From: Chara braunii
Taxonomy: Eukaryota; Plantae; Charophyceae
Assembly (NCBI GenBank): GCA_003427395.1
Contig: BFEA01000027.1
Coordinates: 4,406,882-4,466,994, forward strand
Length of the DNA: 60,113 bases
Reading direction: 5' to 3'
Part shown: piece after piece, positions 10,171 to 33,224 of the stretch
Position numbering within the stretch: position 1 is the stretch's first letter
Layout: each line of letters starts with the position of its first letter
Translations under genes and position numbers: made by a program
The notes under the pieces: generated by a model
The model's input: only the letters and a program-made list of their open reading frames with translations
Databases searched by the model: none
What the model was told of the DNA's origin: nothing

Positions 10171-10529
10171 TGTAGCGGACCTTTGGTTGGTCTGTAAGAC
10201 CAGCCCCTTGGCCTGTTCTCACAGGCCTGTGTTGTAATCGGGGCAGTCCAGTCCAGGCCGGTACCTCTGACGGTACCAGCCAGTCCAGTCCAGTCCCGTC
10301 AGTCCGCTGGGGTATACCCCAGCAGTTGTCTATTTTCTGTCTCATTCTGCATTCGCACAGTTTGGAGTACGTGCGTTGGAGTCTGGCGTGGGAGCTGCGT
10401 TGTGCCATCTCGCTCCCTATCTTCCTCCATCTCCATCTCTATCCCTGGCGGAGCACCACACCTGGTGGGTCCGCCACATTGGTATCGGAGTGGGAACGTT
10501 CCCTGCTCCCACCCACCACCCCGTACAGC

Positions 10530-10915
10530 CGGGAAAACAACAAAACCCGACAGGCGGTTTTTGGCTGTTTTCAGGCCGTTTTTCGCGAAAATCGAGGGAA
10601 AAACGAAGCTGCAGCAGGAAGTGACACGTGGCGAAAAAAACACGTGATTTCACGAAAATCGAGGGAAAAACGAACCTGATAATGGATCTGTAAAGGTTAA
10701 CGGTGTACCTTTTGCATAATGGGTCAGCGAGTAAATTGATACAGCAAGCTTAAACCCTTAGGTGTAGGCGTAATGAAATTATAGATAGTTGCAGCAGGAA
10801 GTGACACGTCGCGAAAAAAACACGTGTCATCACGAGCGCGTGCGCGCAAGCACCAAAACCAAGGCCCCCCCGCCCCGCCTCGCCCCGCTCCACTCCCGAA
10901 TTTATATTATCAAGA
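10530..10915 (-). mobile_element. Helitron-like fragment with 67-bp tandem units
   Basis: Minus strand reads A|TCTTGATAATATAAATT at 10915. The unit cgaaaatcgagggaaaaacgaa.ctgcagcaggaagtgacacgtggcgaaaaaaacacgtg is duplicated. Confidence 0.35.
10675..10787 (+). pseudogene. rrn26: Organellar (probably mitochondrial) LSU rRNA fragment, NUMT
   Basis: cggtgtaccttttgcataatgggtcagcgag...agcaagcttaaacccttaggtgtaggcg matches the conserved 23S/26S segment GUACCUUUUGYAUAAUGGGUCAGCG. The ttaggtgtaggcg part is of alphaproteobacterial/mitochondrial type. Confidence 0.8.
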
Positions 10916-11075
10916 TCTGGGAGCTTGCTGCCACTAGGGTTTGAACCCAGGCACCTGTTGGGCTATGCGCGTGCATAGCCACTCTCATAACACACCCGCC
11001 ACAATGCATTCATGGCTTTGTAGTATGGCACACTCATGTTGAAGAGGTGCCGTGCTGGCTATTTACTCTCCCCCC

Positions 11076-11111
<36 letters not shown>

Positions 11112-11959
11112 CCGGCGAGCAACGAGCAAGAGAGCAGCGACGACGGGGCTGCTATTTGCCCCCCTCCCCCTCCCCCCGTGGTTGTTACTGCCTACGCACG
11201 TGGCCATCCACAGTGCCACGTGGTGGCTTGCTGTTGAACTGAAGACCCCCCTGCTAAGGGGGCTGCTCTACTGTGGTGAGGGTCTGCTCACGTAGCATAC
11301 CCTGAATCTGTTGGTAGGGGCTGATCAAGATCTCAACCCCCTTCCTCCTCCAGCTGGCTGCTGCAGTGAAGGCCAAGACCCTCCTGGTCTTGGTATACCT
11401 TGTGCCCTTGGAGACACCAAGGGCAAGGTATCCTCTCTCTCTCCCCTCTTTCTACTAACCCACCTTCCCTACCTCTCCTCTCTCCTCTTACTCACCCCTT
11501 CTCTTTCCCCCTGCCTCTTTTTCCTCCTCTTTTTACCTTCCTTTTCTCCCACCGCCCACTCTTTCACTCTCTTTTCTTCATTTATTTTCTTTTATTTCCT
11601 CCTTTTTTTCTCTTTGCTTCTTTATCCCTCTCTCTCCCATTCTCTCATCCTCCTCTCCCCCAACCACCACCACATCATCCCTCTACCTCCCACTTCCATC
11701 TTTTTTCCTCTCCCACCTATTTCTCTCTTTTCTCCTTCACTTGTCATTCCCTTCCCCCCCTAATTTGAAATTTTTCTGTTTCTCGTCTTTCTATCTTTCT
11801 TTTGATTTATCTTTTCTCTTTTTTCCAAAAATTTTGAATTATCTTATCCCCCACCCTCTTTTCTGATTTTCTGATTTATTTCATTTTCATTTCTTTATTC
11901 TGAAAATTCGATTTTCTTTGCGGCAACCTTAAATCTGATTAGGTGTTAGTCTTTCTTGC

Positions 11960-12277
11960 TTTCGGCACACGTTTTGACCCCGTGGGGGTAACGAAGTGCT
12001 GCTGAAATTTTCTGTTTTCTCTTTCACTTAGTCTTCTCGGCACACTTCGACCCCATGGGGGTCACAAAATGCTGCCGAAATTTTTGAAAAATCAGATACT
12101 TCATTTCTCTCCACCTCCTCATCCACTTATGTATTTATTTATTTATTTATGATTTTTTTATTTATTTTATGAAATTTCTTATTTGCGGCATCTTGAAACC
12201 TAGTGTGCTTACCTTGGTCTCTCCTTTCCCCTTGGCACATTCTCAACCCCATGGGGGGTAGGGAAATGCTGCCGAAA
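11960..12277 (+). promoter_or_regulatory. Three related stem-loops in the Gypsy 5' leader
   Basis: Copies at 11960-12007, 12036-12080 and 12232-12277: tYggcaca...accccRtggggg...tgctgcYgaaa. Confidence 0.6.
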
Positions 12278-12627
12278 ATCCTAAAAAAATAAATATTATT
12301 TCTCTCTTCATATTTTACTTCCTTTTTTTTCTTCTTTTTTTTTTCTCCTTTTTTTTTTTTTCCTCTCAAAATCTCGCTGTTTATTTATTTTTCTCCCGCC
12401 TTCCCCCCCCCCTATGCTTGCTATTTTATTTTCTTGATTAGGTCATCGGTACCCTACCCTAACCACTAAAACTCCGGTTAGGGTTTTTCTAGGGTTCAGG
12501 GTTCTTCAACCCCCCCCCTACTTCCCCTTCCTATTCGGGCACCCTGGACCCGAACCACCCCTCCCCCTACGTCCTCCGCTCACGCGGACCTCCTCTGGCC
12601 CCCTCCAGTCCGGCCCGTCACCTCCCC

Positions 12628-15600
12628 ATGGCCGACGGTGTGTCACACGCCGTCGACGCGGCGACGACCACGGCACCGGGCTCCACACCCGTGCCGGCGG
12701 TACAGGGCCTGCAGCCCCAGGGGGATCTGCACGACCTCCTCACTTCCCTCCTCGTGCCCATTCAGGCACAACTCGCGATCCTCGCACCCCTACAGGCGCA
12801 GGTGGTGACCCTTGCTGCCGACATGCAGCAACTCCAAGACGTTGTCTGTCCTTCATCTCCTGACTCTCTCTTTTCTTCTGGTTAGCAGTCCGGGTCCCCA
12901 GTCCTCCGACAGGGTGGCCACGGTGGAGCTTCCTCCTCCGCTGGCCCCGACCCGACCATCTTGGTGACCGTCCACGCCCCTAGCACGACGGCCGCCACGA
13001 GCCAGACCCTCCCTCAGTCGACGGGCGCACCCGCCCAGATTCCGATCACTACGGCCACGAGGCCACAACCCGCTACCATGGTCTTAGCTTTTCCGGGTGC
13101 CCCGCTTCTCCCTCCCCTTCGCATGACCGCAGCGCCACCTGACTCTCCCCCCTCTAGGATGCCCCGCGCCGCTCGTGCGTCCACTTCCTCCACTCTTCCT
13201 CCTGCCATTCCTCGCTCAATCTACGTCCAACGTCTCGAGGACGAGCTTGCCCAGATCCTGGTCGACCTCGCCCTCTTACGCCTTCAGCCAGCCCCACCCT
13301 CACAGGTGGCCACAACTTCGAGTGCACCCCCTCCTTCCTCTACCCTTCCTTCCATGTAGGCTCGCTTCCCTCGCCCTGCACCTTATCCAATCCCATCCTA
13401 CCTTCTTCTCATTCCCCCGGTTGCTGGTACCTCTTCTACTGCAGCTCCCTCGCAGCCTGCCGCTGTTGCCCCCGCCGCTCCCCCGTGCGGCCCAGGCGAG
13501 CAGTCGGTTGCACCCCTTTTTCCAGAACCTGCGCCGACTTACTCAATCGTGGCACAGACCTCTGCTCCTCGATCCCCTCGCCGCCAAAACGGTGGCGCAC
13601 CACTCGTCCGCTTGACAGGCATTACCTTGTATGACGGTACAGGCATACACGTGTCTCGGTGGCTACACTCTGCCACCCGCACCCTTCAGCTCATGGGCGC
13701 CCCACCTGACACGTGGGTGGGTCACCTCTCCACGCGCCTGCGTGGCGGTCCTTTTGACGTCGGGGAGGATTTTTACGCTACTCCCTTTATGCGGGTCGGA
13801 CTCCGACCTTCATGGATTTCCAGGCGTTCCTCGAGGATCACTTCGGAGCCCGACATGACGTGACTGACGCCTTCGAGTGTGTCGTCACTACACGTTGGTC
13901 CGGCTCTGGTGGCGCTGCCGGATTGGATCGCCACATCCAGGTCTTTCAGGACGCCCGCCTCATTTGTGACGTGGCGTTCCTCCCCGAGGCTACCCTTATC
14001 GATCGTTTCTTGGCCAGCCTTCCGCTCGAGTACCGCTTCGAGTTATGGCGGTACGAGTTCACATCGGCCCCACAGGCTTACGAGGCCGCCAGGGACCATC
14101 AACGGATGAGGGTCCGTTTTCACCCCGCCTCCTCCTCCCAGCCTCAGCGCACTGGCTACGCCTCCTCCTCCTCTCACGGCACTTCCCAGCGTTGTTCCCC
14201 TTTCCGCGGTCGCCCTCGCCGTTCCGCGCAGCAGGGCCGCCACTTCTCGCGCCGCTTCAGCGCGCTCGAGTATGGTGAGCAGCGCTGTCCCCCGAGGGTG
14301 ACCATAGCGACGACCTCGACCTCGGCGAGGCCGTCCACTACCACTTGGAGGACTCTACTCTCTCTATGGCCGAGCGCCTCTAGCTCATCCTCTCCGCCCT
14401 CTCCTGGGCACGCAGACGCCCCGGTCACGCTGGCGTGTCGCCCCCCGAGGTCCCTCGACAGGACCTTCCTGAGGGCTTTGTCCCTCCTCGCGGTGTCCTT
14501 TCCGCCGAGGAGCGCGCGGCTATCTTGGGCCGGCGTGGGTGTTTGCGATGCCGCCAGGACGGTCATACCTCCTCGCGGTGCCCTTACACCACCGCCTTTG
14601 ACCGCCACTACGCTGACCTTTCCCGCCAGCGTCGTGCTCAGTCCCCCCTCGATGCCTCCTAGCCACGGTGCAGTGTGCACATGCGCCCTCCTCAGTAGTC
14701 GGCTTCCCGACATCCCTGTCGCGGTTTGCCCCTCTCGCTACTGGAGTTGAGGTCTCGCAGGACCTGATAGAGTGTACTCAGCCCTCTGTCGCAGTACCGT
14801 CTGCGCCTTCGCAGACCACCGTATCCCCTCCTACCCCGCCACGACTACCGACGCGTCGAGCCATTTGCTCAGCCCGTTGCAGCGAGCAGCTCGCTACTCG
14901 CGAGGACGTTGTATCCTCTCTTCTGGACTTGAGCATGCTCCAGGCTCGTCATGAGCGACTCACGCTCCATGTCGCTGCACTGCGTCGCCTTCTCGCCATC
15001 CTCTCTGACCCTGATCGCACCCTCCCGATCATCTTCTTACGACTGGGGACCTCCACGAGGGTGTACTCAGCGTTGTGGGATTCCGGTTCGCAGGGCGACT
15101 TCATTCACCCACGTGTGGTGAAAGAAGCCCGCTTACCCACGACAGGGTCTCTGACTTCCATCTCCGTCACCCTAGGGGAAGACAAGACCCAGCGCTTCTT
15201 CGATCAGACGGTTACCGACTTCCCTTTCTTCCTCACTCTCGAGCCGACTGATCGTCCCCCGGCGTCTCGTCGCCACCGCTCCTCCGCCACGACTTTTTTC
15301 TCGGTACTCCGTGGTCGGATCGGTTCCGCAGCATCGAGGCCGATTGGGCGACCAACACTTTCGTTCTCAAAACGAAGTGTGGACAAACGTATCGCGTACC
15401 TTTCATAGGTACCACTGCGATACCACGCCCCGATCCTCCTCCCCCGAAGCCTTCTGCGCCCACACCATCTCCTTCTATCATTGTCACCTCACCTCGGCAG
15501 TTTGCTCACTTCATCCGACAGGACGACGTCACCTTCTTTATGGTGAACGTGACGGATCTCTTACACTATGACCCACCCTGTCCCGATGCCGAGCTCATCC

Positions 15601-18025
15601 CTCTGGAGCCAGATCCTCCTTCTATCTCCATGGCTCCCATCTCTACTTTCGTCCCTCCGCCGTCCGTCGAGTCCACCCCGCCGTCTCGCGCTGACGCTGA
15701 CGCTGAGGAACTCGCACGATATACGACCGATCTAGAGCCCGCAGTTCGTGACCTCATTCGAGAGTACCACGACGTTTTCCCATCGTCGTTCTCGTACGCT
15801 GGCATCCCACCGATGCGCGACGTCAAGCACTCCATCCAGCTTGTGCCTGACTATCGTGTTCACCACCAGGCACCCTACAGACTCTCGATCCCCGAGGCCA
15901 CCGAACTCCAGCGTCAGCTTGAGGAGCTCCCGAGACAGGGTTTCATTAAGCCCAGCAACTCCCCGTGGGGTGCACCCGTCCTCTTTGCTCGCAAAGCGGA
16001 TGAAATTCTCCGTCTCTGCATCGACTATCGAGGTCTCAACCGCTACACGGTTAAGAACAGCTACCCCATGCCTCGTTCCGATGAGTTGTTCGACCGCCTA
16101 GCAGGCAACCGCTTCTTTACGAAGATTGATCTTTGTAGCGGTTACCATCAGATCCGCGTCGCTGCAGCCGACCAGCCGAAGACAGCGTTCCGATCGCGCT
16201 TCGGGCACTACGAGTTTACAGTGATGCCATTCGGCTTCACCAACGCACCCGCTACCTTCCAGAGGGCGATGAACGACATCTTCAGGGACATCCTGGAGCA
16301 GTACGTTCTCGTCTACCTCGACGATATCCTAGTTTACAGTCGTACCCTTGAGGAGCACCTCAGACACCTCCGCGATGTCCTTGACCGCTTGCGCAGACAT
16401 GACTTCTACGCCAAGCTGAGCAAGTGCCGCTTTGCCCAACACAAAGTGAATTTCTTAGGACACTATGTGTCTGACCAGGGTCTCCACATGGACGACGCGA
16501 AGATCACTACTATTGCTGAGTGACCCGTCCCCACATCCGCCAAGCAGCTTCGCAGCTTCCTAGGCCTTACCAGCTACTATAGTAATTTCATCCAGGGATA
16601 CTCTAGGTATTCCTACGTCCTTACCTCCACCCTCCTCCGGAAGAACCCGCCCTGGGCTTTGACACCCGGTCACACCCCTCCACGAGGACGCCTTCCGCGC
16701 CCTCAAGAAGGCGGTGATATATGCACCGGTTCTTCACCTACCCGATTTTGATCGCCCTTTTATCCTTACCACCGATGCGTCAAACTTTGTTGTAGGAGCA
16801 GTGTTTTCTTAGATTTTTCCCTCCTCTCCTGATTCCTCTCATCCTCGTATCCCTCGCTTCCCACCACCTACCCCTTCCCGACTGACGCCTACTCGTCCAG
16901 CTATTGGCGAGCCTTCTCTTGACTATTCTCCTACCATCCCCGAGGACGGCACTGTCGAGTCTCGCTTAGGTGATTGTCTGATAGCCTTCTACTCTCGTCA
17001 GCTCCTGCCTGCCGAGACAAACTACACCGTTGATGAACGTGATGTTATCGCAGTAGTCTATGTCGCTCGGCACTGGCGTCACTACCTGCACGGGGTACCA
17101 CTCACAGTGCACACGGACAACTCTGTTGTCCGGGCTTTTCTGACAAAACCGAAGCTCACTCCTCGACAAGCTCGCTGGTGGCGCAACCTATCCGAGTTTA
17201 GTTTCACCACTGAGCACATCAAGGGTGAGACTAATCGGGTCGCAGATGCCTTATCCCGGTGCCCTGACCACGATCAGGAGCAGATCCAACTCGCTTCCAT
17301 CTCGATCACCTCCGTCACCCACTCGGTGATCGACGAGTTTCGCACTTAGTACCGCCATTGCCCCGACTATCGCGACATCCGCGTAACCCTTCGGAGTGGC
17401 AAGACCATCCCGAACTACTCTCTCGGGGATAACGGTCTTGTGTACTAGCACGGTTCACAGGGCACCAGAGAGCCCCGTATTTGCGTTCCCTCCATTGGAC
17501 AGCTACGTGTCCGGGCAGTAGCAGAGTTCCATGATCAGGCTGTCGTCGGTCATATGGGCTTTCACAAGACGTTGGCTCGTCTGAGCTGCCTGTACGTCTG
17601 GCCGAAGCACAAGAACTTTGTGAAGGACTACGTCGCAGAGTGTCCCACCTGTCAGGAAGTGAACAGTGCGAACTACCTGCCTTATGGTTTGCTTCAGCCT
17701 CTTCCTATCCCTGAGGGTCGTTAGCAGTCCATCTCGATGGACTTTATCGGTCCTCATCGTCCTCCTACCCCCCGCAGTCATGATGTTATCCTGGTCGTCG
17801 TCGACCACTTCACGAAGCGTGCAGGCTTTGTTTCGTGTCGCTATGCCATCAGTGCACATGAGGTCGCCGACATCTTATTTGACCGAGTCGTGCGTGACCA
17901 CGACTTACCTCTGAGCATCATATGTGACCGAGACCCGCGCTTTACCAGCTGATTCTGGCGACGCCTCCACGAGGTTTACGGCACTCAGCTCCGCTTCTCC
18001 TCGTCTTACCATCCTCAGACTGATG
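12628..18025 (+). mobile_element. Ty3/Gypsy chromovirus-type retrotransposon, 5' part (gag-PR-RT-RNaseH-IN N-terminus), decayed
   Basis: Gag zinc knuckle CLRCRQDGHTSSRC (~14540). Protease ALWDSGSQGDFI (~15070). RT LCIDYRGLN, KIDLCSGYHQ, MPFG, YLDDIL (15540-16523). RNase H LTTDAS and RVADALSR. Integrase HHCC motif and SMDFI...SSYHPQTD. Multiple stops and frameshifts. Confidence 0.95.
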
Positions 18026-18279
18026 CTATGAATACCCCCCGACGGTGCACAGGCGCGGCCAAGTCCGCGGCCGCGGACGAGGCCGCAAGCCCGCGGACGC
18101 GTCCGCACGGCTTTCGCGCCACGTGGCAGCCAGAGGGGAGGGGGTCTCGGGATTCGGGAACCGCCATTCGGCGACGCAACCCCTGCTCCACCCCCCCACA
18201 CAAAAAAAAATGGAAAAAAAACATCTTTTGGTTGGAGGTGTCGAGCGCATCGGTCCCGCACGGGGACCCTCCCGGCCGC

Positions 18280-21200
18280 GTCACGCAGGATTTGGCAGGA
18301 CTTGTCAAGGAGAGCGTTTGTCGCTCCGGCTGAGTGCGCCAGCCGTACCTCTCGCGAGCCCCTACGACAGGACAGGGTCACGCGAGGCACCGCTTACCTC
18401 CACCTGCGGGAGTTGTCACCATCCCTTAGGTGGACGTATCCCCGCCGAGCTACTGAACCACATGCGAAAGCTTTTCGTATGCAATTGCAGAGGTGGCCCA
18501 GCCGAGGGCGTTTCTCGCTCGTTGTAGCATAGGGGGTACGCGCGGTCGAACGCCCAGAATCGAACCCGTACACGAATCGACGCACTGGGGGGCTGAAGTC
18601 CCAGACACGATCCGACGCCGGTCGACTAGGACGCGCTACACATACCACGCGTTACGCCACAATACTCACACTTACCAACACATAATACGTGAGAACACAC
18701 CATAAACAACACCACAACGCAACAATCTCCTAGTCCCTTTAGTATCCGACCCATAACTCTTTGCAGTCAAACTCAGATAGGTATCGCGCGCTGGGCTTTC
18801 GTATAAAAGTCGAACGAGCGCACGGCCTTCTCATGTCAACCAGCCGGCCTTCTCATGTCAACCAGCCATGTGGACATACGCAATCATTCGCGTTGATGGC
18901 GTACTACGTGGTACTCGTAGCCCCGTGACCCTTGATAATCTCGAGGGTCGCGTTCGACACTCAAGTGTGGGCTGACATGCGCTTTGAGGGGTAATCTCTC
19001 GACGCCAGACAACCGCCATGTACGGTTGAAGACCACACCCTCTTCTGCACCCTATGAGAGGGGTTGAGTAGACAACTCTAAGTTGTCGTGGCGGTCAGAT
19101 ATCAAGGGGTTTGACTTTGACGGCTGCCACGGACTATAACGTCCAACCCTTATAACTCTAAAAAGAAAAAGGTCAAATGGGACCTTCCTTTTCTCTCAGT
19201 GCAAACTTACTTAATCACTACGCACGGCCTCAATAAGTCGAACGGACACAAGAAACATGATATAGAAGTTATGAGATACGAGACAATCACTCTCATAATC
19301 ACGGTGTGGCTTCCTTCAAATATATATATACATAAATAATCATATGCAAAACCAAGTCTGGACTTCAATTCACAGAAGATACCTGCAATCACATCAAAGA
19401 TCCACATCAACAGAGCACACGCTACACGGGGTCAACTTCAACCATTCTTTACGCTCACACCCCTTGTTTTTGCCACACAAGCCTCACTCTCTGCGCAACT
19501 CTTAAAATAAAGTACTCAGTATCTTTAATAAATGGTCATTCAATTAAAGTCCAGGTGAAAACACAACAAATAAATCAAACCACACGGCTAAAGCCTTTAG
19601 GTTGAGTGGCAAGAGTGAATTAGAGTTGAGCCGGAAACCGACCTGTTATCAAAAGATAACAGGTATCAAAAGATAACAGAAGATGATCCCTGTAGGATCA
19701 GCTTGAAGATAGTCAAGCCTTGAATCAATCTGAATAAAGGTGACCTGCAATACAGCACAGGCCAAAGAAAAAGTACTACTTATGTTTATGCCAAGGGGGG
19801 AATACTCCCTAAGTCGTAGCCTAGTTCCACTACTAGTACCAAGTCACTGAGTACCTCCCCTATTCAGGACAGATCTGCTAAGTAGCTCATAGCTGAAAAA
19901 TATTATAACTCCTCAAATTCTACGAAATTTCGGCAGTGCTTCCCGTAGGAAGAGTGCCTTTTCAGAATTTCTACAAACTCAAAAACGAGTAACTCCTCTA
20001 GATTTGTAGAAATTTCGGCAGAGCTTCCCATAGGAACAGGAGGCTGCCAAGATTTATACGAAGCTGAAAAGACAGCAAGACAAAGCAAACTACACTTGGG
20101 ACTATGTTCTGACACCTTCTTGATGATTCAGGATCAATGATAGCCAGCACGACCTCTAGATGAGATTGTGAGTTAGCATTGATCCTAGCCCCTGACAGAG
20201 TCAATCCTATCTTCATCCAAAGTTCTCCCTCCCATCATCCATCTGATCTACCTATGGCTCCATCACCTGGCGAGAATCTACAACAACTACTCTATCAAAA
20301 AGAATACCCCAGAGATGACCTTCAAAAACATGCATAGGTGAGTGCAACAACATCTCTTACCAACCCTCAAGTTCTTTTTCAGGTCACATAGTTCGTTCAA
20401 AAACCCTCATTATTCCCTTTTTACCCTTCCTTACATAAGACATAGGGTCAGTCAACCCAACTTATGGATGTGACTGACCTGCCAATTTATATAACTAGGT
20501 CACACCAACTTATGGTGCCCTAGCCTGGTAACACAAATATACGTACGCATAAGACCAAACCACACCAACTTATGGTGTGACCAGTTTCTGCAAAATGATT
20601 GACATAAGGCGTATGACCGGCCGCACCAACTCATGGTGAGACTGGTCAGCCTGAACGTTCAACATACACATAGAACTGAACCTCCTCAACTTATGAGGGG
20701 TCAGTCTCTGCCTAAACAAAAACAAACGGCATATGGCCAAACACAACAACTTATGTTGTGTTCGGCCAGCCCACACGGTTACATACGGCGTAGAGTCAGG
20801 CTACCCAACTCATGAGTAGTCCAGCCTAGCCTAGACATAATCACATGCGCGAAGAACTGAACAGCCCGCAACTTATGCGTTCGCCCGACCTTCGCAATAC
20901 AACCATGTTCAACTTATGGACATAAGGCATAAAACTTACCTCAACAACTTATGTTGTGATAAGTCTCTGACTAAACAAAATGACATAAGGCATATAACCA
21001 GGGCGCACCAACTTATGGTGAGACCTGATCAGCCTAACTCTCGGCATATACAAAAAAACTGAACCACCTCAACTTATGAGGAGTCCAGCCTTTGCCTGAA
21101 TGAACGAAAAACATATGCCCAGACACAACAACTTATGTTGTGCCTGACCAGCCCATACAGTGACATATAGCATAAGACTAGGCTACCCAACTTATGAGTA

Positions 21201-22671
21201 GTCTAGCCCCGCCCAAATAACAACAAGCGTGTATGACCGAACAACCCGCAACTTATGCGTTCGCCCGGCCTCCGCAACACAACTACATCCAATAGATAGG
21301 TTTCACAATCAGATTATGTCTTCAGACGAGTGGCCAGGTCACCTCAACTTATGAGGATCCCCACCCAAACGTCATATATGTTTAGAAAAAGGAAAATAGT
21401 CAGACTTTATATATCTCTCTATTTTCGTGTTATCAAGGTCATAGGACCAACTACCCAACTTACGGGTGAGTCAGCCTGCCCACAGTTACCACACCAGTTT
21501 GTATTGTTCATCTTCTTTCCCTCTGCTTTGTCTTCTACCGGCTTATATGGCTGGATCTCCCAACTCATGGCGTCCAACCTGCCATGAATATAAAATAATA
21601 AATAATGTATCACTTTATATGCTCTGATTCTCTTAGTGATGGCGGCTCATGACTTGACCACACCAACTTATGGTGCGAATAGTCTCGCTTGAAACAATAA
21701 AGCATAAGACCGAGTCACACCAACTTATGGCGTGGTCAGCTTCTGCCTAAACAAATAACGTAAGGCGTATGACCGGGCCCCACCAACTTATGGTGAGACT
21801 TGTCAGCCTAAACTTTCGGCATACACAAAGAGTTGGACTACCTCAACCTATGAGGAGCCCAGCCTTTGCCTGAACAAGCGACGAAAGGCATATGACCAGG
21901 CACAACAACTTATGTTGTGCCTGACCAGCCCATACAATTACATACAGCGTAGAACTAGGCTACCCAACTCATGGGTAGTCTAGCTTGCCAAATAACAAGT
22001 AAAACAAGTGCGAGAGACTGAGCAGCCCACAACTTATGCGTCCACCCAGCCTCCACAACATATTTGACATCTCTGTGTTCTCTGACTTCGCACTGATAAT
22101 CTTGATTAAACCAATACATATTTGTCAGTTTACTTTGCAAATCAGTCCTGAATTCAAACAAGCAAGGAAATACAGTTCTCTTTTTCAGTCATACTTACAG
22201 TCAGGCCAATAGCAATAGGGTAATATAGTTTAATGATAGGATCACACGCGTAAATCGAGGGTTATACCTGAGTGTTCCCTGCCTCCAGAACCCCGGGCTC
22301 CGGCAGAGCTCCCGCAATCGGTGGGGCGACCTCCCACAGACGCCTTGGCGCGGACCTACGGGTTTCAATCCCGCCTGCCGCCTTCCTCTCGTAACCAAAG
22401 GACTAGACTGAGACTGAGAAAGGCAGGAAAAGAAAGTTCATGCTCTCAGATACAAGAGAGGTGCGCTCAAGCTCACTAGAGAGGGCCTTGTTATCTTGTT
22501 ACGCCTGAGGGCCCCGCAATGATGGCCAAAAATAACGCAGCCGGAACGCTCCGATCACGACCAAACTCAAGGTAACAGCCCCTAGGCGGCCTCTAATACC
22601 CCAGGCAATGAACCCCCCTTGTTAAGACTGACCTCACTCCCGTCGGCGCCACACTCTTCTTTCTTCTTGCT
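18280..22671 (-). mobile_element. Putative long LTR / noncoding portion of a nested minus-strand LTR retroelement
   Basis: Minus strand reads PPT-like AGCAAGAAGAAAGAAGAG followed by TGTGGCGCC at 22653. Two ctgccgaaattt motifs (~19925, ~20009) are shared with the host Gypsy leader. No credible ORFs. Left boundary and second LTR not found. Confidence 0.45.
20444..22045. repeat. Array of 25 hairpins with near-invariant C-AACTTAT-G loop, ~60-bp period
   Basis: Loops at 20458, 20506, 20566, 20627, 20687, 20747, 20806, 20869, 20910, 20945, 21009, 21070, 21129, 21188, 21249, 21345, 21456, 21561, 21664, 21721, 21784, 21844, 21906, 21965 and 22030, each flanked by complementary arms. Confidence 0.92.
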
Positions 22672-25071
22672 TAGCCTATGTGGCTGCTGCTCTCAGTGGG
22701 GAACAGTGTCCTGCTCAGCAGCAGCGCACAGCAAAAAACACCGCCCGACACACCAGCAGCGTACAACACACGACACTGTTTCGTACCGCAGCAGCTCACA
22801 GCAAGGCAACAATGCTCTACACAGCAGCCACACTTTGCTGTGTAACCCCAAAAGCCCGAGTACTGGGTGTTTGGCAAGTGACACCGTAGTAGCCCCTCAA
22901 AGGCACAATGATACCCAGTCGGTGTGCCGTGGCAGCCCGGTCCGGTAACAGCGGCGGAAGCTGCTACAGTCTTCTCAGGATTGCTGCAGCGGCCTAGTAA
23001 GGCTCCCTCATACACAGCCCGCAGCTGTAGCCTCTCGCAAGTAGTGATACAGTTCGTAGCCGCAGTGTACGACGTGCACAGCAGCAGCCCACAGCGGGAA
23101 CAGCCCACAGCCTGTGTGTAGCGGCGGCCAGCCCCCCTTCGCTATCCAGCATGAAGTTGCAGTCCTACCATTCCAACGGTTGCCAGTCTCAGAACAGCAC
23201 AGCCGCAATGAGCAGGGAGGCACACAGTTGTGAAGCTGCACAGGGTGCGGCAGCGGACAACATGCACAACCACTCGGTTAGCTACAGCCAGACCACCAGC
23301 TGTTGGCTTCCCCAAGGGCCCGCCGATCGTAGCAGCCCTCGACAAGCCCGACCACACCCCCAAGCTGCAGTGCCCCTGGTTCCGACTAGCTCACCACTAC
23401 ACCCCCTAGCTAGATTCGGCGCGCAACTTACTCAAACGGTATGCGGTAATCCCTGGGCAACACAGCAGAGGATCTCAAACAGCACCCATAGTAACTGCTG
23501 TGCCAGATACACAGCCGAAGTGAGAAACATGCTGCAAAGGCGAGTCAGCCGAACGCACAGCAACCATGCGGCCTCAATCAGCATAAGCCTGGTCAGGCAG
23601 TCAGCACCACACCACTGTTGAGAACAGCATCAGTACCGTTCTAGGACCTGCCTAAGAGCAACATCTGCACTCTCCGGTAGTACGACTCCGGCATGGGACT
23701 TAGCATCAGCAGTTCAGCCATCCGCACAGCCCGCGAGCCGAGGCACACCGGTCACCACTCCAGAATGCAGGCTGTTGCCCAAACGCAGTCTGTAGCCTCT
23801 GACGTAAGATAGCAACCTGAGAAGGTGACTTTAAACAATACTACGGGCAGCCCACCAAACTGCATGCAGATGTCCGCCGTGCAGACCGCCGTCGTGGCCA
23901 GGTACGTACCTTCACACCTTAACAGACCGCCGTTGTGGCCAGGTACGTACCTTCACACCTTAATCTTCATCTCCCCCTCTCTCAATGGCATGCATACACA
24001 CGCGCACCTTCTCTCAGTCGCTGCCCTGTTCGGCTTCAATTGAATCCTCCGCTAGAGGCGACCAGGGGCATGACCCAATGGAGATGGGCCTGATGACGGG
24101 TAGCGGGACCCGATGGCGACCACGGCAACGGTGGTGACGACGAGTCCACAGCCTCTGGGTGAAGGCCTCGGCCAAGACCACGCTGGCAGGACGACTACCA
24201 ATCGAGTGTCACCTGGGCGAAGCCCTGCCCCACCACTCACAAAATGTGCGAAATGGGTCATGGCCACGTTCAGCTCTATGGTGAGCGCCGCTCCATCTTG
24301 CTCTCCTGTTCTCCCTCTCTTGCTACTTCTCTTCGCAGGTGCAGGCGCTCCTTCGTTAGTAGCAGCGCCACGGCCTCAATCACTACGAGAACTGCAGCAC
24401 CTTAGATCAGCGAACAGGAACAGCAGCGGGTCACTACGAGCAACCACTCAACTACGCCCACCGGATTTTTACTAGCCAATAATGGATCTGACGCTGGAAC
24501 CTGGTCGAGTTCATGTGGTCGGCTTCCGTTAGCGGCCACCATGGCATATGTAACGACGAGTAGTGAACTCCTTCACGATGACGATGATGATTACAATAGC
24601 GGACTCAGCGAGGGGCAGCGCCCAACGACCAACCCCCGAGCGACCAACATCACACTCTTATGGGTGGTGATCTCCACAATATGCAGGAGCTTGGCGGATA
24701 CGTGGATGGAGCCGACCGTGATGGTGCCGAGCATAAGCAGGAATGGATTTCTAACGAAGAGCACGCCTAGGATCACGATTACTACGGGTACAAACGGTGC
24801 GTCCCCACTCTCCAACTCGTCAAAATGTGCAGGATGGGAACGTAATTTGAGAATGAACCTTTAGCTAGAACGTGGAAAGGTACATCTTCACTGCAGCGGT
24901 CCGCTGCTACGCTGCTCTTCATACGAGCAGATGACAATGAATCTCCCGCTAAGACCCGGGAGATACATCCACCTATTCTGTTTTATTCCGTTCGCCTTTA
25001 CTGGCACATCGCGCAGATTGACACCGTAACTGGACGTTCGGCTTATCCCGCATCGCCAGCTCTCAGGCATG

Positions 25072-25075
<4 letters not shown>

Positions 25076-25163
<88 letters not shown>
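25076..25163. repeat. (CT)n microsatellite
   Basis: Pure CT run. Confidence 0.97.
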
Positions 25164-25166
<3 letters not shown>

Positions 25167-26414
25167 ACCTGGTCACACTTGCGGTCGAATCCCACCGTAG
25201 CGACGACCATCGCAACGAAGACGTCGGCGGCCTATTCGAGGAGGAAATCTCCCCACTCTATTGCTCCCAAATATATGAAATGAGCATGAATCTCCCGCTA
25301 GAACTCGGGATGATACATTGCTATTTCCCCGAACCTTCCCGTTAGTGGCCGCGCAGCTGCTACCGCCCGTGCCGGCCAGACCACTCCTCAGATCCAAATT
25401 CTGACGCTGCCATCTGATCCGGAGCGCTCTGAAACCTCGGACTAGCATCCTCACGCGCCCAAAACGGTCAAGAAACGGCCTATTTCCACTCCCACCTTTT
25501 TCCCTCTCTCGACTCCATCGCGGACCCCTTTTCTCATCTAACTCTCTACCTACTAATCTAACACTATAACTAACGCCTCCATTGAACTCGCCCGGTCACA
25601 AAACCCCGGGATAGCATCCTGCCTTGCCCGTTTCCGTCGAGAAATGAGGAAGTTATGACTTTCTCCCTCTCCTTACTCCTCCCTCTGTCCGCCATCTCAG
25701 ACTTCGTCTTCGTCTTCTCCTATCTGGTCTGTATCTATCGCGGGACCACGTCCAGATTCATATCGGGCTTTGTCCTCTCTTTTGTCCTAAAATTGCTGAG
25801 ATCTAGACTGTCCGCTCCTCCTTTTCCACCATCTCTCCTGCTTCCGCCATCTGCGTCCGCCCAGTCCGACAGCCCCGTGAGAAGGTGAAGTACTCAACCT
25901 TCCTGCTGTTGGACTGCTGGGATCTTATACGAGCTCTACCGGGCTGAACCTGCTCCTACCCGACTATCGATAGAAGGGAAAGAAGCCAGGAGTGACAAAC
26001 TCCAATGCATGCACCCTGCCTGTTTTGGGGCCAGGTGCATCGGCTTTTTTTTTTTTTTTTTTTCTGAATGTATCTGGCACAGGTCCTGCGACAGATTCTT
26101 TTTGTCTTCCTCTGCATCTGTTGCCTCCGCCTCCCCGTCTCTTTTCTTCCCGTGGCAGTCTCCTTCGCCTCCCTCGAAGTGGCAGCCCCCCTCGTCTCCT
26201 TCCAACAACGAGTGCGACCGAAAGCAACCTGAGTGGGTCTCCACCACCCATTGTCTCATCTGTTCCTGGAGGTCAGGCCTTTATTTTAACAGTTGGTGGG
26301 TGTGCCAACTGAGCTGGCCAGTCGGTTCTACAGCCAGTCCCGGGGTGTCATCGTGGAACTGGCTGGCCCCTGGCAAATCAGAAATACTTGGTTTTACTCA
26401 TCAAGCTCCATTAT

Positions 26415-26474
26415 CTGGATTCGAACACAGGTCTGCATTTCTACAGCTCTGTGTGTACTAGCTGAGTTAAGCCC
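26415..26474 (-). mobile_element. tRNA-derived SINE head
   Basis: Minus strand ggcttaactcagctag (A-box-like) ... gtgttcgaatcc (B-box). Confidence 0.45.
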
Positions 26475-28263
26475 ATTGGTACCTTTGCCAGCCCCTGAAC
26501 CAGCGCATGGGCCGTGTCTCAACCTGGAAGCAACGCGTATACAAAAATAAATAAAATTAAAACAAAAATATAATAAAACAGCAGGACGGGGGGGGTTCCA
26601 TGTGACCAGCTGGCTACAGCTGCATGCCTCCCCACTGTGCCTTGGGCCGCTCCGCTCTGGCATAGTTTACCGTCTTTCGGGCCTCAACGGGCATGCTCAG
26701 GGCATACTCACAATGCAGGTCCCTACGGCCATGCTCACACCGCAACCCCAAACCTGCAAAGGTATGCAGATTTGGGACAGACAAATTTGAGGTTTTGGGC
26801 ATGGTTCAGGTCACACACTGCTGCACCTTTTCAGATGGGACACGGCCCCGGCCTTCTGCAGCAATAACGACTTGGTCCTTTGCTGGTCCCACGGCACCAT
26901 CCAAGTTGTGCAAGAGCTCTTGTGAACGAACTTCCACCAATTCTCAAAAATAAAAAAAAATAGAAATAATAAAAATAATAATACAGAATAGGACGGTTTT
27001 GCGGTCATCTCCAGCGGTAGCCACAATCTCCTTGGCCCCGCAGCTCCACAGGCCGCTGACAAAACGGACACACCAATGGTGCTTCAGGGACTCTGGTAAA
27101 ATCTGCGTGACCAGCCTTGTCCCTCATGGGCGCCGACGGGCATGCCCCCACTCAGTTCCTACTGCAGATCGTGGTTGGCGGACGCCGCACCTGCAGAGAG
27201 GCGCCCGATGCTCAACTTTTCTTCCGTCTCGCGGGCCAGTCACCCATCGGCTGACATACACGTTGACTTTCTCGGTCCGTGTTTCAACAATTCATGGGTG
27301 TATCAATTGAGCTACGCCCCGCTGGTCCCCGCACACAACTCCGGTACCAGCGTTGTCGCCGCGCCCCAGAAACGGGACCGACAAAAAACTAAAGGTAAAA
27401 AAAATAAAAATACGAACGTCGAAAACCGGTGCTTTTGGGGAAGGGAGACTGCCAGTACCACTCTTAGTTCCGCCGACCGGACCTACGGATGGGCCGGCGA
27501 CAAAATCAAGGGGGGGGTAGCCCCGCCGGGCCCTCAACCCCTTGGCGTCTTCAGCCGCTCCGTTGTTCCACCGCCGCCGGCCACCGCCCTCGATCCCTGT
27601 ACCGTCGCTTTGAAAGTCCCATGCCAGTACCAATAGTGCTAGTACCCAAGACTGAGACGAACTACTGCAAATTTCAATAAAATTTGTTGCCGCACAGGAC
27701 GCGGCCTACCAAAATACCTCAAGGCCACTCCTTCGCCTACGGACCAAACTCCCGACTGTCGACCTATGGCGCCCGCCGCTCATAGGGCCTGGCCCCGTCC
27801 ACGATTGTCAACCTCCCGCGCCCACCGCGCGGAGGTCCCTGCTCACGTTCTATTTTCTCTCGCATGCTCCAATCATCACCCAACGCAACACCACTTCCTA
27901 TGACACATGCCGTATGGACGCAGGTGCACCACGGTCACTTCAATAGAAAAAAATTTCCTAGTTTTAACCAAGGCCAAAAAAAAAAAAAAATGCCGGCAGA
28001 AACGCCAACTCTATAGCACCAAAATTAAATTCATCACGCGCGCCTTAAAAATTGCGCGCCCATACACTCTCTACTTTCCGTCAACCCTTCAGTCAACGCG
28101 AACCAAACACAACCGCAACTCGTGCAGCATACTCAAGTTTCAAACCAAGCCTATTTTCTGTCACTTGCAAAAAAACAGGGCGGATACCCTTGTAAGGGTA
28201 TTCGCGCCGACAGCGGGGTTGGGCAGCGCCAACCAAAAGACCTCTTCGAATGTCAAAACGTAC

Positions 28264-28314
28264 TCCCCCTAAGGATGGTTGGGTCTGGCCTCAACCGAAA
28301 CGCGGCGTCGGGGA
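28264..28314 (+). ncRNA. Minimal type I hammerhead ribozyme fold with G5A core variant
   Basis: tcccc-CTAAGGA-t-ggttg[..]caacc-GAAA-cgc-g-gc-GTC-gggga. Stem I tcccc/gggga, stem II ggttg/caacc, short near-palindromic stem III, GUC cleavage triplet. Confidence 0.75.
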
Positions 28315-28744
28315 CCGCCAGTATGCGTTGACTCTCGAGTCACGCGTACGTGCTTTGGATGTCACGAGCTACTATTGTCTTTCCTTCTTGGCATTTTCAA
28401 AGTACGAAGTCGTTTTGCATTTTGAGATAACGGAGTGGTAATGCTGTGTTCAAATATGCTTGGACTATCTCGCTGCAAGTGTGTCACTACTGTGTAATCA
28501 CTGCACCGAACTCACTCACCTGTGATCAAGCGCTGCAACCTGCCAAGGGACCTCACTTGGAACTTGGTGGTAGCGAGGACCAGTTACTAGTTACCAGTTA
28601 TCAGATTTGACGAAGAAGGATCGCTGCTCTATGATTGGATCTTACAGTGGAAGTTGTCGAAGACTGTACTATGCTGCGTGAGGGACCAGGTTTACAGGCA
28701 GCGCAGTCCAGCCGTGAGGAGAGGGTCGACTGAGGAGCTGAGCG

Positions 28745-29870
28745 ATGAGGAGCAGGAGAAGTGAGTCGTGGGGAAGACATGAGCGACGAATGGGTTATGA
28801 AAGTGGGGGTTGGGATAGCGGAGATGACAGACGCGATAGAGGCAGAGAGCGAGGAAGGAGGTATGATGACCGACGGGGGTCGTCAACGGAGGACTATGGG
28901 AGAAGAAATGATGGGGGGAGGCAAGTAAAATGTTACGAGTGTGGGGAATATGGACGCTATAAGAGTCAGTGCCCCCGGCTTCAAGGAAGACTCACCGGAG
29001 GCACGATCTCTTTGAGTCGAGATCTAGAGGAGTCTCTAAGCTCAGTAGGGAGGATGACGAGGCAACTGCTAGAACAGCAAAGGGAAGCGGAAGAAGTCAA
29101 GCGAGAGGCCGAGAAAATGAACAAGAAAGAAGCGGAAGAGCGAGAAGCAAGGGAGGAAGAAGCGAGGGTCACGTTGCAGAAAAAGTTGGCTAAGGAAGAG
29201 AAGGAGAAGAAAAGAAGCTGGGAGTTGAAAAAGTTGTTAGTGGAACAGCGTGAGGAATACGAGGCGAAATTGGACAAGGTTGTGGGCCTGAGTCGGAAGA
29301 TGAAAGGAGTCTCAATTGGAAGTAAGAAGAAAGAGAAGGCAAATGTGACTCCGGTGATGAGCTCCAAAGATGAGGAAGAGACCGAAGAAGAAGCTATGCC
29401 CCTTAAAGATAAAAGGAAGCGGAAGAATTCGACGGGGGAGGTGGAAAATAGCCCGCCGGTTGAAACTCCCAAGAAAATGGGGAAGAATGTTGAAGTTGAG
29501 ACGCTGACGGGCCAGAAGAGAAAAGGACGAGGAAGGCCGACCAAAGCGGAGGCTCAAGCAACTCGAGTAATGAAGGGCGAAGACCCATGGGAGGGAGTCC
29601 CTGTGGGGGAGAAATTTGCCACTGAAGCAGCATACAGGAGGCGGTCAGGAAAGCCATCGGATCTTTTATCCGGAGACACTGAAAGCGATGTGCAAAGGGG
29701 CAGGTCTACCGTTCTACGGGGTGAACGACGATGTGGACACACTGTCCGAGCTACGCGTCACGTACTGCTATCGGGGTCAGAAGACGTCGTGTTCAACGTC
29801 AAGCAAGTCTGAGGAGGAAGATCAGATAAGGGGCGAATCCCAGGATCCGCAAGGAAAGGCAGACGAGTAA
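28745..29870 (+). pseudogene. ORF1-like region of the Penelope-like element (zinc knuckle, coiled coil, AT-hook-like), frameshifted near the 3' end
   Basis: RD/RG-rich N-terminus, CYECGEYGRYKSQC, E/K-rich helix, KRKGRGRPTK. Confidence 0.6.
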
Positions 29871-29887
29871 GTCTGAAGGATGGAGTT

Positions 29888-32421
29888 TTGGAGTGTCGGA
29901 AATGGTGTAAGTTGAATCGCAGTGCCAGAAGTTTGATGCCTCTAATAGAAAGAATCTTAAGAAATGCAGTCCTGCTTCTGATTTTAGACAACGAGATTAG
30001 CTGGGGAAGGAAGTATGTGGAGTGTATCTGGGAGGTCTTCGAAAAGACCAAGGGTAAGTGGGATGTTCCTAACTCTTGTGTGTACCTCCTACTGGATCCT
30101 TGGTGTAGACCGACCTATATAGGTAAGACAGAGAGACTATTGAGCGACCGATGGTCAGAGCATATAGGACGGACCCTGTCGGATTGCGCGACTCGTAAAA
30201 ATAAGCTTTACCAATGGCTCAAGAAATGGGGGTGGCAGTCCTATGTGGCAGTTCCGGTGGCGATAGCGGAGGGCCAAGAGCTAATGAGATTGGAAGAAAG
30301 GCTGATTAGACGTTGGTGTCCTGTGCTGAATGTTAATGGATGGAAGGATGGAATGGAAAAGACAGAAAAAATAAAAATAGGAGAGGAAGACGGGAAAGGA
30401 AGAAGAAGAGGAGTTTGTTCTTTGAGAAAGAGAAGGTGTTGCATTTTCATACGAAAGAAGGGTCGAGCAGAGGAAAGTTAACTGAGGTTATCCGTTCGAT
30501 TAAAGGAAAACGTGAAAGTATCGTGACTTCAAGCGGTGGCGGGATCTGGATCGAAGACTGGGGTGTTGTAAGAAGAACCTTCGGGGATTCCGATGTGCAG
30601 TTTAATGGAAAAAAAGGGAAGCTCAAGAACGCTAAAAAATGGTTCGAGGAGGGAGGCGAAGTAAGGCTCCTAAGGATCCGGGAGAGACGACCAGGAAACC
30701 CCGGGATGAAAAAACAGCTACATCAGCTGTTGAAATGTCCGTGGTCCGTGAGAAAGTTGGAGTCACAGTCGATGGATCAGTTTGCGGAATTGTACATGGA
30801 GATTAGAAGCTTTTCGAGGAAAAGTACAAGAAAATCCCTAAAAGATAAGATCGACGGAGTGGTGAGAAGAAGATTCGGAGTAAGCTTGAGGAAGAGGGTG
30901 CTAGTTGGCGTCAAGTATGATGAAAGGATCTCGCGAATGGAAATTAGGAAGTTGATGCTAGAGAAGATTAGTACGCAGTGTAAGTCTGTTGCGGAAGCGA
31001 AGCTGCGATGTCAGAAGCTACGACTTGTCTGGAGAAAAAAACAGAGGGTAGGTGGTCTTCTCCATAACCATAGACGAGCCAGTCGTCTCTTGGCTACAGT
31101 CTGTTGTTGTGCAAACCTTGACCTCCCACGCCAGGGAGAACACGTGGCTTTTCGTTTAAGCAGTAGGACTGATGTTGATATGAGGATGTGGAATGGTAAG
31201 AATGTGATTCAAGGGATGGTTAGTGAAAGGGATGATATATGGCTCTGTAGAGAACTGAATGATGAGATGATCAAGTCTGGTCTCGAACCCACGTGGACGA
31301 TACAGCAAGCCAAACGTTGTATACGCAAGGTTCGTGCGAAGAAGGAGGGTTTGATCGATGAGATCGAAAGGGTGAAAAGGGAATGGGAAGGATTGGTGTT
31401 TTGCCCGGTCGATAAGAACTCTACGGAGACCATGGTAGTTTGTCCAGTTAAGTACGAAGAAGGAATGCGTCAGATGTTCTGGGGTAACCACGCGTTTGAT
31501 GCGGTGTGGAGAGAGAAAGAGGAGGTCTTGATCCGAGCAAGGAAAGAGTACAAGGAGAAAGGGCTGGAAAATATTGGAAAATGGGATAACAAAGGGTCAT
31601 GGGGAAGGACGTATGTCCTACCCAAACATAAAGACCTTTCAAAATTTTGGCCGATCTCCCCATCTCTTCGAGAGCCAGCGAGGATGGCCAACCAAAGAGT
31701 GGCTAAGGCTCTCAACTTCCTCCTGTTCTCCCTTCCAAAGAGAAGTCACTTCAACACCTTCTTATGGGCTTCCGACCGGTTGATTAGGCAAAAAGAGGGC
31801 GTCCCTATGGGGAGATCAAGTAGCCCTCCAATCGCCTGCATCCTGTGTGCTTTCTATGAGTATGAGTTTCTGACGGGCCTGGGTGCTGACGAGTCGTTAG
31901 TGAAAGGGATTAGGCTGGTGGACGATGTATCGATATTTGTCTGGCAAGGGTGGGAGAAGAGGAACCAAGGGAAAGCGAGGAAGATTATTGACCGTTTCGA
32001 AAAGTCTTATGATCCGAAGTTGTCGTTGAAGAAGACGGACGACGGGTCGAATGAGTGGAGCTTTCTCGGGTGTAGGATCAAGATTGAGGACGGGAATGTG
32101 TCTACTTGGTTTCGAGAAAAGAATTTCAAAGAGATTTGGGAAGGAGGCGAGAAGCTAACCTACAGATGCTTCTAAGACTTTGCGTCCTACACGCGTCAGA
32201 AACAGAAGAGAATGCTGATCAACGGGATGTTGCATAGGATTAGGGAATGCTCATCCTCTGCTGAATTGGTTGAAGAAGGATTGCTCTCGTTGAATCGCGA
32301 ACTGCGAAAGCAGTCGTACCCATTTGACATGTTTGAACGCACTTTTTGGTGTTTTGTACGGAAACGTGCGCTGGACTGGGCGGGAGTAGCAAGGAGGGTT
32401 ACCTTTGATATTCGGGCTTGA
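29888..32421 (+). pseudogene. GIY-YIG endonuclease + reverse transcriptase (PLE), disrupted
   Basis: CVYLLLD...YIGKTER...RWSEH...LEERLIRRWCPVLN, then a frameshift at ~30340. RT motifs CPVDKN, YVLPKHKD, QKEGVPMGRSSSP, RLVDDV, WSFLG. Stop at 32173-32175. The first catalytic-Asp motif appears deleted. Confidence 0.88.
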
Positions 32422-32807
32422 GGTGTTTAGGCTCGAACCTAGAACTTGGCGATTGGTGCTCTGCCTATTTCCTTGCTTTTGTTTTTTGCTTTTTGGTTTT
32501 CGTTTTTTGGTCGAAGTCGCACGGGATTTGTTGTTTTGAATGGATGGATGTTAGAATTTGATACAGGTAGGCTCTAACCTAGTACTTTGCATCTGTTTTC
32601 TGCCGATTTGGTGGGTTTTGTGCTAGAGTGTGTAAGAGGAATAGGACGAGGGACTGTTAGGAACCAGGATAGCATGTCCATACATGGGTTGTTTCGAGAA
32701 GGTACCAACAAGAACTAGTATGCGGGTGTCATCAGACATATGGGCAGGTACTATTAATAGGATAGGAGCTAATTCAAAAGACCTCTTCGAATGTGGAAAC
32801 GTACTAA

Positions 32808-32855
32808 CCCTAAGGATGGTTGGGTCTGGCCTCAGTCCAAACGCGGCGTCGGGGA
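32808..32855 (+). ncRNA. Second, more degenerate hammerhead copy in the 3' pseudo-LTR
   Basis: ccCTAAGGAtggttgggtctggcctcagtcCAAAcgcggcGTCgggga; GAAA is changed to CAAA. Confidence 0.55.
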
Positions 32856-33189
32856 CCGCCAGTATGCGCTGACTCTCGCGTACGTGCTTTGGATGTCACG
32901 AGCTACTATTGTCTTTCCTTTTCGGCATTTTCAAAGTACGAAGTCGTTTCGCGTTTTGAGATAACGGAGTGGTAATGTTGTGTTCAAATCTGCTTGGACT
33001 ATCTCGCTGCAAGTGTGTCACTACTGTGTAATCACTGCACCGAACTCACTCACTTGGGCAACGAACGAGGAGGAAAGAAAAAAAAAAAAATGAAAAGGTT
33101 TTTTTTTTTTTTTTTTTTTTTGATTGATTGATTGAGTGGTGGGGGAGGGGTCACCTCACCCCCCCGCCACCCACCACGCGCGCGCGCAC

Positions 33190-33224
<35 letters not shown>

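Follow-up and report, generated by a model that had tools for sequence, protein, structure and literature searches.

What keeps a short loop nearly constant when the stems that carry it differ from one unit to the next? The question is raised by a tandem array of hairpins in Chara braunii (Charophyceae), on contig BFEA01000027.1 of assembly GCA_003427395.1. The stretch analysed, called the window throughout, spans positions 4,406,882 to 4,466,994 of the forward strand (60,113 nt), and its first letter is position 1. A first-pass annotation made from the letters of the window alone had described the array as a selected scaffold of RNA or single-stranded DNA (ssDNA) inside the long terminal repeat (LTR) or untranslated region (UTR) of a retroelement. 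Our results support selection for a folded single strand, in which the loop and the pairing are kept and the stem sequence is not. The evidence points to a folded-RNA platform of a kind not yet described. To the first description we add a corrected genomic context, two independently retrieved copies at the loci L101 and L124, and quantitative tests of selection. The comparison set thus comprises three copies (window, L101 and L124) with 57 hairpins in total.

The hairpin array

The array consists of three similar blocks and an irregular middle section:

20444-22045, minus strand: hairpin array with 25 loop motifs (24 hairpins), minus-strand loop C-AUAAGUU-G, stems of about 17 bp and G/U-rich linkers
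20547-20903, minus strand: block A with six hairpin types, 78-79% identical to blocks B and C by self-BLAST
20938-21283, minus strand: block B, found by self-BLAST, missing from the copies L101 and L124
21284-21701, minus strand: irregular middle section, its four hairpins 96-111 bp apart and their loops at 21345, 21456, 21561 and 21664, kept in L101 and L124
21702-22060, minus strand: block C, found by self-BLAST and block alignments

Allowing at most one mismatch, the motif CAACTTATG has 33 matches in the whole window. Twenty-five of these lie on the plus strand at 20458-22038, the same number of recurrences as first reported, and all 19 exact copies of CAACTTATG fall inside this interval. 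Shuffled sequence is expected to contain a mean of 12.2 near-matches of CAACTTATG over the full 60 kb, and here 25 loop motifs are packed into 1.6 kb. The loop variants AACTCAT (four copies), AACTTAC (one) and AACCTAT (one) are present as listed at the outset. A spacing of mostly 57-64 bp had been claimed as well. This holds for much of the array, with 17 of 24 motif-to-motif intervals at 57-65 bp, but not for the middle section with its wider intervals. Self-BLAST resolves three six-hairpin blocks in the window with a mutual identity of 78-80%, in line with the threefold repeat of the stem-type order noticed earlier. The array is thus organized like a satellite with a higher-order repeat, the blocks being 78-80% alike and the arms of neighboring units only 32% alike. 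Tandem Repeats Finder reported nothing over the array when run on 19000-24000, because adjacent units are too dissimilar. Clustered regularly interspaced short palindromic repeats (CRISPR) were also considered. The constant part of the Chara array is only 9 nt, the variable flanks are mutually complementary and homologous between blocks, and the host is eukaryotic, which rules out a CRISPR-like array.

Folding around each loop produces a hairpin at 24 of the 25 window sites, as the claim of pairing flanks had predicted. The exception, at 20910, marks a junction between blocks and has a stem of just 5 bp. Across the 57 hairpins of the three copies the median stem measures 17 bp, and the loops of folded units comprise 5-7 nt. 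A geometry of GGC, 14 bp, loop, 14 bp, 3-nt bulge and GCC is found in 19 of the 57 units, mainly in two of the six unit types. In the other unit types, the bulge is 1 nt long, the 3-nt bulge is missing or the stem is longer. The single fixed geometry of the first-pass annotation is therefore real in a subset of units and overstated for the array as a whole. A first, plain MAFFT alignment of all 40 units allowed RNAalifold to recover only 4 pairs, because sequence alignment misplaces unrelated stems. It was replaced by per-type and per-block alignments and by a covariance model, R1.

The exact loop is present in 48 of the 57 hairpins, and the other nine are each one transition away. Homologous units have none of these variants in common, and the variants therefore look like recent decay of individual copies. 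Loop mutations occur in 6 of 24 hairpins of the window copy compared with 1 of 16 in L101. On the minus strand the tolerated changes are A-to-G at loop positions 1, 3 and 4, and GUAAGUU occurs in 2 of the 57 hairpins. The minus-strand 3' flank of 15 of the 57 hairpins also contains CTTATG, the exact complement of the loop's CATAAG, and the shorter TATG is found in 38. This flank motif could reflect loop-to-flank pairing or could be a relic of how the units originated.

Selection on loops and pairing

To assess selection, we aligned seven homologous blocks of six hairpins. The window contributed three of them, L101 two and L124 two. Pairwise divergence among the blocks is 5.4% in the loop and 2.4% in the two loop-closing pairs, compared with 21.6% in stems, 30% in bulges and 24% in linkers. 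Loops are hence conserved four to five times better than stems and linkers. Since stems diverge about as much as linkers, the stem sequence appears nearly as free to change as the linker, and the strong constraint falls on the 9-nt loop motif. These differences do not fit a neutral satellite, where all parts of a unit would diverge equally.

Pairing is maintained even as stem sequences change. Standard pairs occupy 93.4% of pair cells, compared with 32-43% if the partners are slid by 1-3 columns. How much of this would persist without selection was gauged by a neutral simulation, in which the consensus received substitutions equal in number and kind to those observed and the structure came from the consensus sequence alone. 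The simulations retained 87.6 +/- 1.0% of pairs and the observed value is 91.7%, which none of 2000 simulations reached. High pairing is only partly informative, because neutral decay at about 20% divergence already leaves 87.6% paired. Pairs changed on both sides number ten compared with 5.9 in shuffles (9/500), and the covariation score is 0.242 compared with 0.210 in shuffles (1/500).

A deeper signal than compensation within types is the specificity of arms between types. The 12 unit types have arms that are 32% identical between types, and for each 5' arm the 3' arm of the same type is the best folding partner or close to it. Folding energies are -18.7 kcal/mol for cognate arms and -11.5 kcal/mol after swapping, and 0 of 20000 permutations were as low. 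The constraint on the loop and the pairing above the neutral expectation bear out the proposal that the array is selected rather than a neutral tandem repeat.

Folded strand

Departures from the Watson-Crick majority are unequal between strands. They comprise 58 minus-strand G.U states and 17 A.C states (p = 2e-6), the latter being G.U if the plus strand is read. The raw excess of G.U is partly confounded by a G/U-rich composition and was therefore retested with polarised states against the transition spectrum. The column-level spectrum in stems (5-block set) is symmetric, with 35 G.U-making and 37 A.C-making transitions. A strand-neutral alignment of the arms gives 173 against 64 in favor of minus-strand G.U, and the minus strand is the more stable one in 54 of 57 units. 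Energy parameters for DNA make plus and minus strand about equally stable, and the wobble asymmetry therefore fits RNA better than ssDNA. Short of proof, the folded strand is most likely a minus-strand RNA with the loop C-AUAAGUU-G. The minus strand had already been named as the functional one at first inspection, and the wobble asymmetry agrees with that choice.

Copies of the array and the conserved block

L101 (BFBZ01003173.1, 7.9 kb) contains 16-17 hairpins in the same unit order as the window. It was retrieved by scanning metagenome contigs for a pattern of three motifs 40-60 nt apart. The scan yielded at least 120 loci, of which 120 had their spacings tabulated and 12 were read. Among the matches listed besides L101, spacings fit unrelated tandem repeats with 27-nt periods or CRISPR-like 65-66-nt periods, and none of the 12 loci read contains a hairpin array apart from L101 itself. 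L101 is filed with metagenome contigs, yet it shares 80% identity over 4 kb with Chara braunii repeat DNA. Judging from this identity, L101 is most likely a Chara sequence, or one from a close relative, that was deposited as metagenome.

The third copy was reached through a HMMER search with an open reading frame (ORF) from the GC-rich end of the block that surrounds the array. The search led to P0121, a Chara gene model, whose locus L124 (BFEA01000159.1) carries an array of 17-18 hairpins. P0121 (1356 aa, DUF659; L124 10001-25459) has a 10.5-kb "intron" that consists of the repeat carrying the hairpin array, and a 230-bp inverted repeat supplies it with exon ends on both strands. The gene model is probably an annotation artefact, and its inclusion of a repeat copy as an intron is relevant for the annotation of the genome.

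The sequence in common between the copies extends well beyond the hairpins:

18224-22531, minus strand: conserved non-coding block of 4.3 kb with the array, defined by pairwise comparison with L101 (1921-5871) and L124 (17289-21179) at 80-86% identity
18239-18464, no strand assigned: most conserved, GC-rich end of the block from the identity profile, with an inverted copy in L124 10.8 kb away

The right boundary of the block (22531) is identical in the three copies and the left one (18224/18239) agrees to within 15 nt. Beyond the right boundary, the flanks of window, L124 and L101 have only weak, diverged collinear patches in common. The right boundary is therefore not the end of an element, and the block represents a conserved portion of a longer repeat (at least 10 kb), not a whole element. 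The comparisons place the array in non-coding DNA, within the conserved 4.3 kb of an interspersed repeat that Chara braunii carries in multiple copies.

Searches for coding capacity and for structural hallmarks of known element classes were negative. ORFs of the block have no Pfam match, no conserved ORF was found in the block, and a linked gag or capsid gene is missing from all three loci. A search for homologous proteins with two short ORFs, one in the array and one in the flank, gave no candidates and no self-match, so such ORFs are not in the collection searched. An exact look-up of 8 window ORFs in the protein collection likewise found none present. None of the three loci has an LTR pair, a primer-binding site or a polypurine tract. 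Target duplications are absent from the boundaries of the 4.3-kb block and from the inverted repeat of L124. Helitron ends (TC...CTRR, insertion between A and T) were checked by eye at the block boundaries and do not fit.

Two parts of the block stand out for other reasons. At 18520-18640 (minus strand), where conservation of the block is highest, there are tRNA-like promoter boxes, including a B-box-like motif GGTTCGATTC. ARAGORN on 17500-23500 and Rfam found no tRNA, and the module may be tRNA-derived or similar to a short interspersed element. Towards the other end, the pieces at about 22299-22397 and 22479-22530 (within 22246-22640) show very high depth from RNA-run contigs that diverge on both sides. 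These pieces are probably common to a much more abundant, expressed repeat.

Genomic context

The neighborhood of the array is composed of a retroelement and a later insertion:

10171-18025, plus strand: left part of a degenerate Ty3/gypsy chromovirus (LTR, gag, reverse transcriptase (RT), RNase H, integrase), unrelated to the array
18026-34132, no strand assigned: insertion of 16.1 kb that interrupts the integrase region of the gypsy element, flanked by an 8-bp target duplication GACTGATG and bearing short terminal inverted repeats (CTATGAA.ACCC)
34133-35786, plus strand: continuation of the same gypsy element past the insertion, collinear with the gypsy copies L001-L003

The RT ORF at 15252-16520 shares 92% identity with Chara braunii proteins and belongs to a Ty3/gypsy chromovirus. 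Three other copies of this gypsy family (L001-L003, pol 89-92% identical) are collinear with 10171-18025 and 34133-35786 only, and they have no match to window 18026-24600. Their collinearity is broken at 18026-34132, and the gypsy element was therefore split by the 16.1-kb insertion. The array block lies within this insertion, so the proposed location in the LTR or UTR of a retroelement did not stand. For annotation purposes, the array should not be counted as part of the adjoining gypsy element. The LTR of any other LTR retroelement was rejected as well. The block has no second copy in the window (60 kb) or in L124 (35 kb), and the boundaries common to the copies have no TG..CA ends and no target duplication.

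Within the insertion lie the array block and a Penelope-like element, along with an assembly gap and diverged patches that are collinear with L124. The target duplication GACTGATG is found at 18018-18025 and 34133-34140, the termini read CTATGAATACCC and GGGTGTTTCATAG, and GC-rich subterminal repeats of GCGGACGCGTCCGCGG are present. An 8-bp target duplication with short terminal inverted repeats is typical of hAT-type elements. A transposase with a hAT domain was not found in 18026-34132. A DUF659 (hAT-type) ORF adjoins the block in L124, and the termini of the window insertion (CTATGAA...) are absent from L124.

Comparison with described systems

No Rfam family and no published description matched the array, as the first-pass annotation had supposed. 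At the E-value threshold, Rfam returned only mir-9436 for 18000-22800, with 23.9 bits against a gathering threshold of 80 and a chance-level E = 0.16. The covariance model R1 was used to scan 140 kb of Chara sequence and found all array units on the minus strand. Elsewhere in these 140 kb it found nothing but one chance-level match in the gypsy copy L003 (E = 2.4). A search of full-text literature found no description of such hairpin arrays.

Several known systems resemble the array in part. The bacterial sponge RNAs CsrB and RsmZ expose one short motif many times over in their hairpin loops and have high avidity for one protein. They differ from the Chara array in their GGA motif, irregular spacing and known partner CsrA, and they have no link to mobile elements, whereas the Chara array has a period of about 60 nt and lies in a eukaryotic repeat. 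This likeness is meant as an analogy, not as homology. Packaging hairpins of single-stranded RNA viruses, or the Gag/nucleocapsid sites of retroelements, have a loop motif in common on variable stems that is read cooperatively by a capsid or nucleocapsid protein. The viral hairpins are degenerate and scattered in coding genomes, in contrast to the Chara units, which are tandem, non-coding and without a linked gag or capsid gene. Among mammalian long non-coding RNAs, the A-repeat of Xist and the units of NORAD are tandem structured units with U-rich linkers that recruit many copies of one protein. These conserve their whole core including the stems, whereas the Chara array conserves the 9-nt loop motif only.

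The closest resemblance in design is to engineered 24x arrays of MS2 or PP7, in which identical protein-binding loops stand on deliberately varied stems and linkers with a period of 50-60 nt. Binding is only predicted for the Chara loops. The engineered arrays are synthetic and use other loop and bulge sequences, whereas the Chara array is natural and has diverged copies with 80-86% identity at two loci. Arrays of short motifs on mobile elements are also known from tandem repeats in the UTRs or LTRs of plant LTR retrotransposons and from the Su(Hw) array of the Drosophila gypsy element. These are DNA sites or neutral satellites without compensated stems, and the Chara array is not located in an LTR or UTR. 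Membership of the Chara array in CsrB sponges, packaging sets, the Xist A-repeat or MS2/PP7 arrays is neither claimed nor supported.

Proposed role and alternative explanations

We tentatively suggest that selection maintains the array as a series of RNA hairpins, read from the minus strand of the window, which would act as a multivalent platform of loops for a loop-specific protein and would serve the RNA of the element. We judge this account to be somewhat short of an even chance. Each unit would present C-AUAAGUU-G on a stem of about 17 bp, and many stems also have a 3-nt bulge and a GGC/GCC clamp at the base. Alternatively, the loop might be a UAAGU pentaloop closed by A-U. A transcript would display 17-25 identical loops and might thereby form a high-avidity platform for an RNA-binding protein encoded by the element or by the host. 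The platform could act in packaging, export, stabilisation or silencing evasion of the element RNA. The diverse stems might stop neighboring units from mispairing and recombining. Many loop-exposed copies of one motif, as expected for a multivalent scaffold, are indeed found, with 17-25 per copy and 48 of 57 identical, and low-depth oligo-dT RNA-seq reads from related copies, which fall over the array, hint faintly at a transcript that carries them. If the loops are binding sites, the array would be a natural counterpart of engineered MS2/PP7 arrays, with identical loops on different stems. It would then illustrate how a mobile element can acquire an RNA handle of high avidity that escapes misfolding and recombination.

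A number of points weigh against this account. Compensation within types is modest (10 of 106 pairs), the comparison is confined to three copies, and the shuffle counts overstate significance because the seven blocks are related. The preference for the minus strand is accompanied by a G/U-rich composition of that strand overall. The gap between strands is also modest when a 301-nt stretch of block A is compared with dinucleotide shuffles (z = -5.2 for minus and -4.1 for plus). Most of the RNA-seq reads over the array are 90-95% alike and therefore come from other copies. The strandedness of the RNA-seq is uninformative, with both mate orientations equally represented. That the platform serves the element is an assumption.

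Four alternatives were weighed against a protein-binding RNA platform, and each is disfavored by at least one result. The array could be a source of small RNAs, if a polycistronic hairpin cluster were processed into phased small RNAs, by a Dicer-like enzyme or by trimming, and these fed the silencing of the element or of stem-matching targets. We regard this as unlikely. The hairpins are in tandem on one transcript-like unit and the only Rfam near-match is a microRNA precursor model (mir-9436), though at chance level. However, plant DCL1 substrates need a 21-nt duplex plus a lower stem, and stems of about 17 bp with a loop of 5-7 nt are shorter than that. With a median of 17 pairs, the units do not reach the stem length of a plant-type microRNA precursor cluster. 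Selection is also strongest on the loop, which Dicer discards, and weakest on the stem sequence, which would be the guide. A neutral palindromic minisatellite, with units born as inverted repeats through replication or template switching and decaying without function, seems quite unlikely as well. It could account for the large share of pairs that the neutral model keeps (87.6% at about 20% divergence) and for copies that look old and broken, with more loop mutations in the window (6/24) than in L101 (1/16). It would not account for loops and closing pairs whose divergence is 4-10 times below that of stems, bulges and linkers, for pairing above that in all 2000 neutral simulations, or for a wobble asymmetry despite a symmetric transition spectrum. 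The 12 unit types with unrelated arms that all pair with their own partner are similarly at odds with neutral decay.

The remaining two alternatives assign the loops or hairpins a different partner or a different nucleic acid. Loops might pair with other RNA, either with the 5' end of the U1 small nuclear RNA (snRNA) or with the CUUAUG/UAUG motifs in the flanks, which would compact or dimerise the RNA. UAAGU matches positions +2 to +6 of the 5' splice site, AUAAGU is one base away from GUAAGU, and the tolerated A-to-G changes at loop positions 1, 3 and 4 include two loops of 57 that read GUAAGUU. Pairing with U1, raised at first inspection as a speculative decoy function, would involve just 5 contiguous complementary bases within a closed 7-nt loop, however, and it leaves both the invariant A at +1 and the invariant closing C-G pair unexplained. 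For pairing with the flanks, the presence of CTTATG in 15 of 57 units and of TATG in 38 is offset by the motif missing from most unit types. We consider loop-to-RNA pairing improbable in either form. A very improbable explanation is that the structures form and are recognised as ssDNA, in a DNA intermediate of element replication or transposition. The hairpins are stable with DNA parameters (-7.6 to -15.6 kcal/mol), four of six folds have z of about -5 to -6, and the block is inside an insertion with an 8-bp target duplication. Yet the unit 20609-20653 reaches z of only -1.0 and -2.4 on its two strands, and strands that fold about equally as DNA leave the 58:17 wobble asymmetry unexplained. 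The array starts at 20444, 2.4 kb inside the nearer (left) end of the insertion at 18026, and internal arrays of about 20 hairpins are not part of any transposition mechanism known to us.

A more general idea is conceivable, though we hold it to be doubtful. Mobile repeats of Chara might carry an undescribed class of cis-elements in the form of hairpin arrays. In such arrays, a cognate protein or an snRNA would recognise the loop as an address specific to the family, and the stems would drift under a pairing constraint. The AUAAGUU family would be an example outside LTR retroelements. The device would then be common to several element classes, or imposed by the host.

Other features of the window

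A Penelope-like element occupies 28234-33053 inside the 16.1-kb insertion. It has a GIY-YIG domain upstream of the RT (weak Pfam matches) and 286-bp terminal direct repeats. Such an element fits a Penelope-like clade with permuted domains that has already been described in the green lineage (PMC8557442). An N run, i.e. an assembly gap, follows at about 33350-33640. By analogy with L124, an inverted copy of 18239-18464 would be expected and could be hidden in this gap. A long microsatellite-like array with an 8-bp period and 183 overlapping copies lies at about 2167-3600. With gathering thresholds, the sole Rfam match in the window is a full-length U6 spliceosomal RNA gene at 57836-57939 on the minus strand (RF00026, 55.4 bits).

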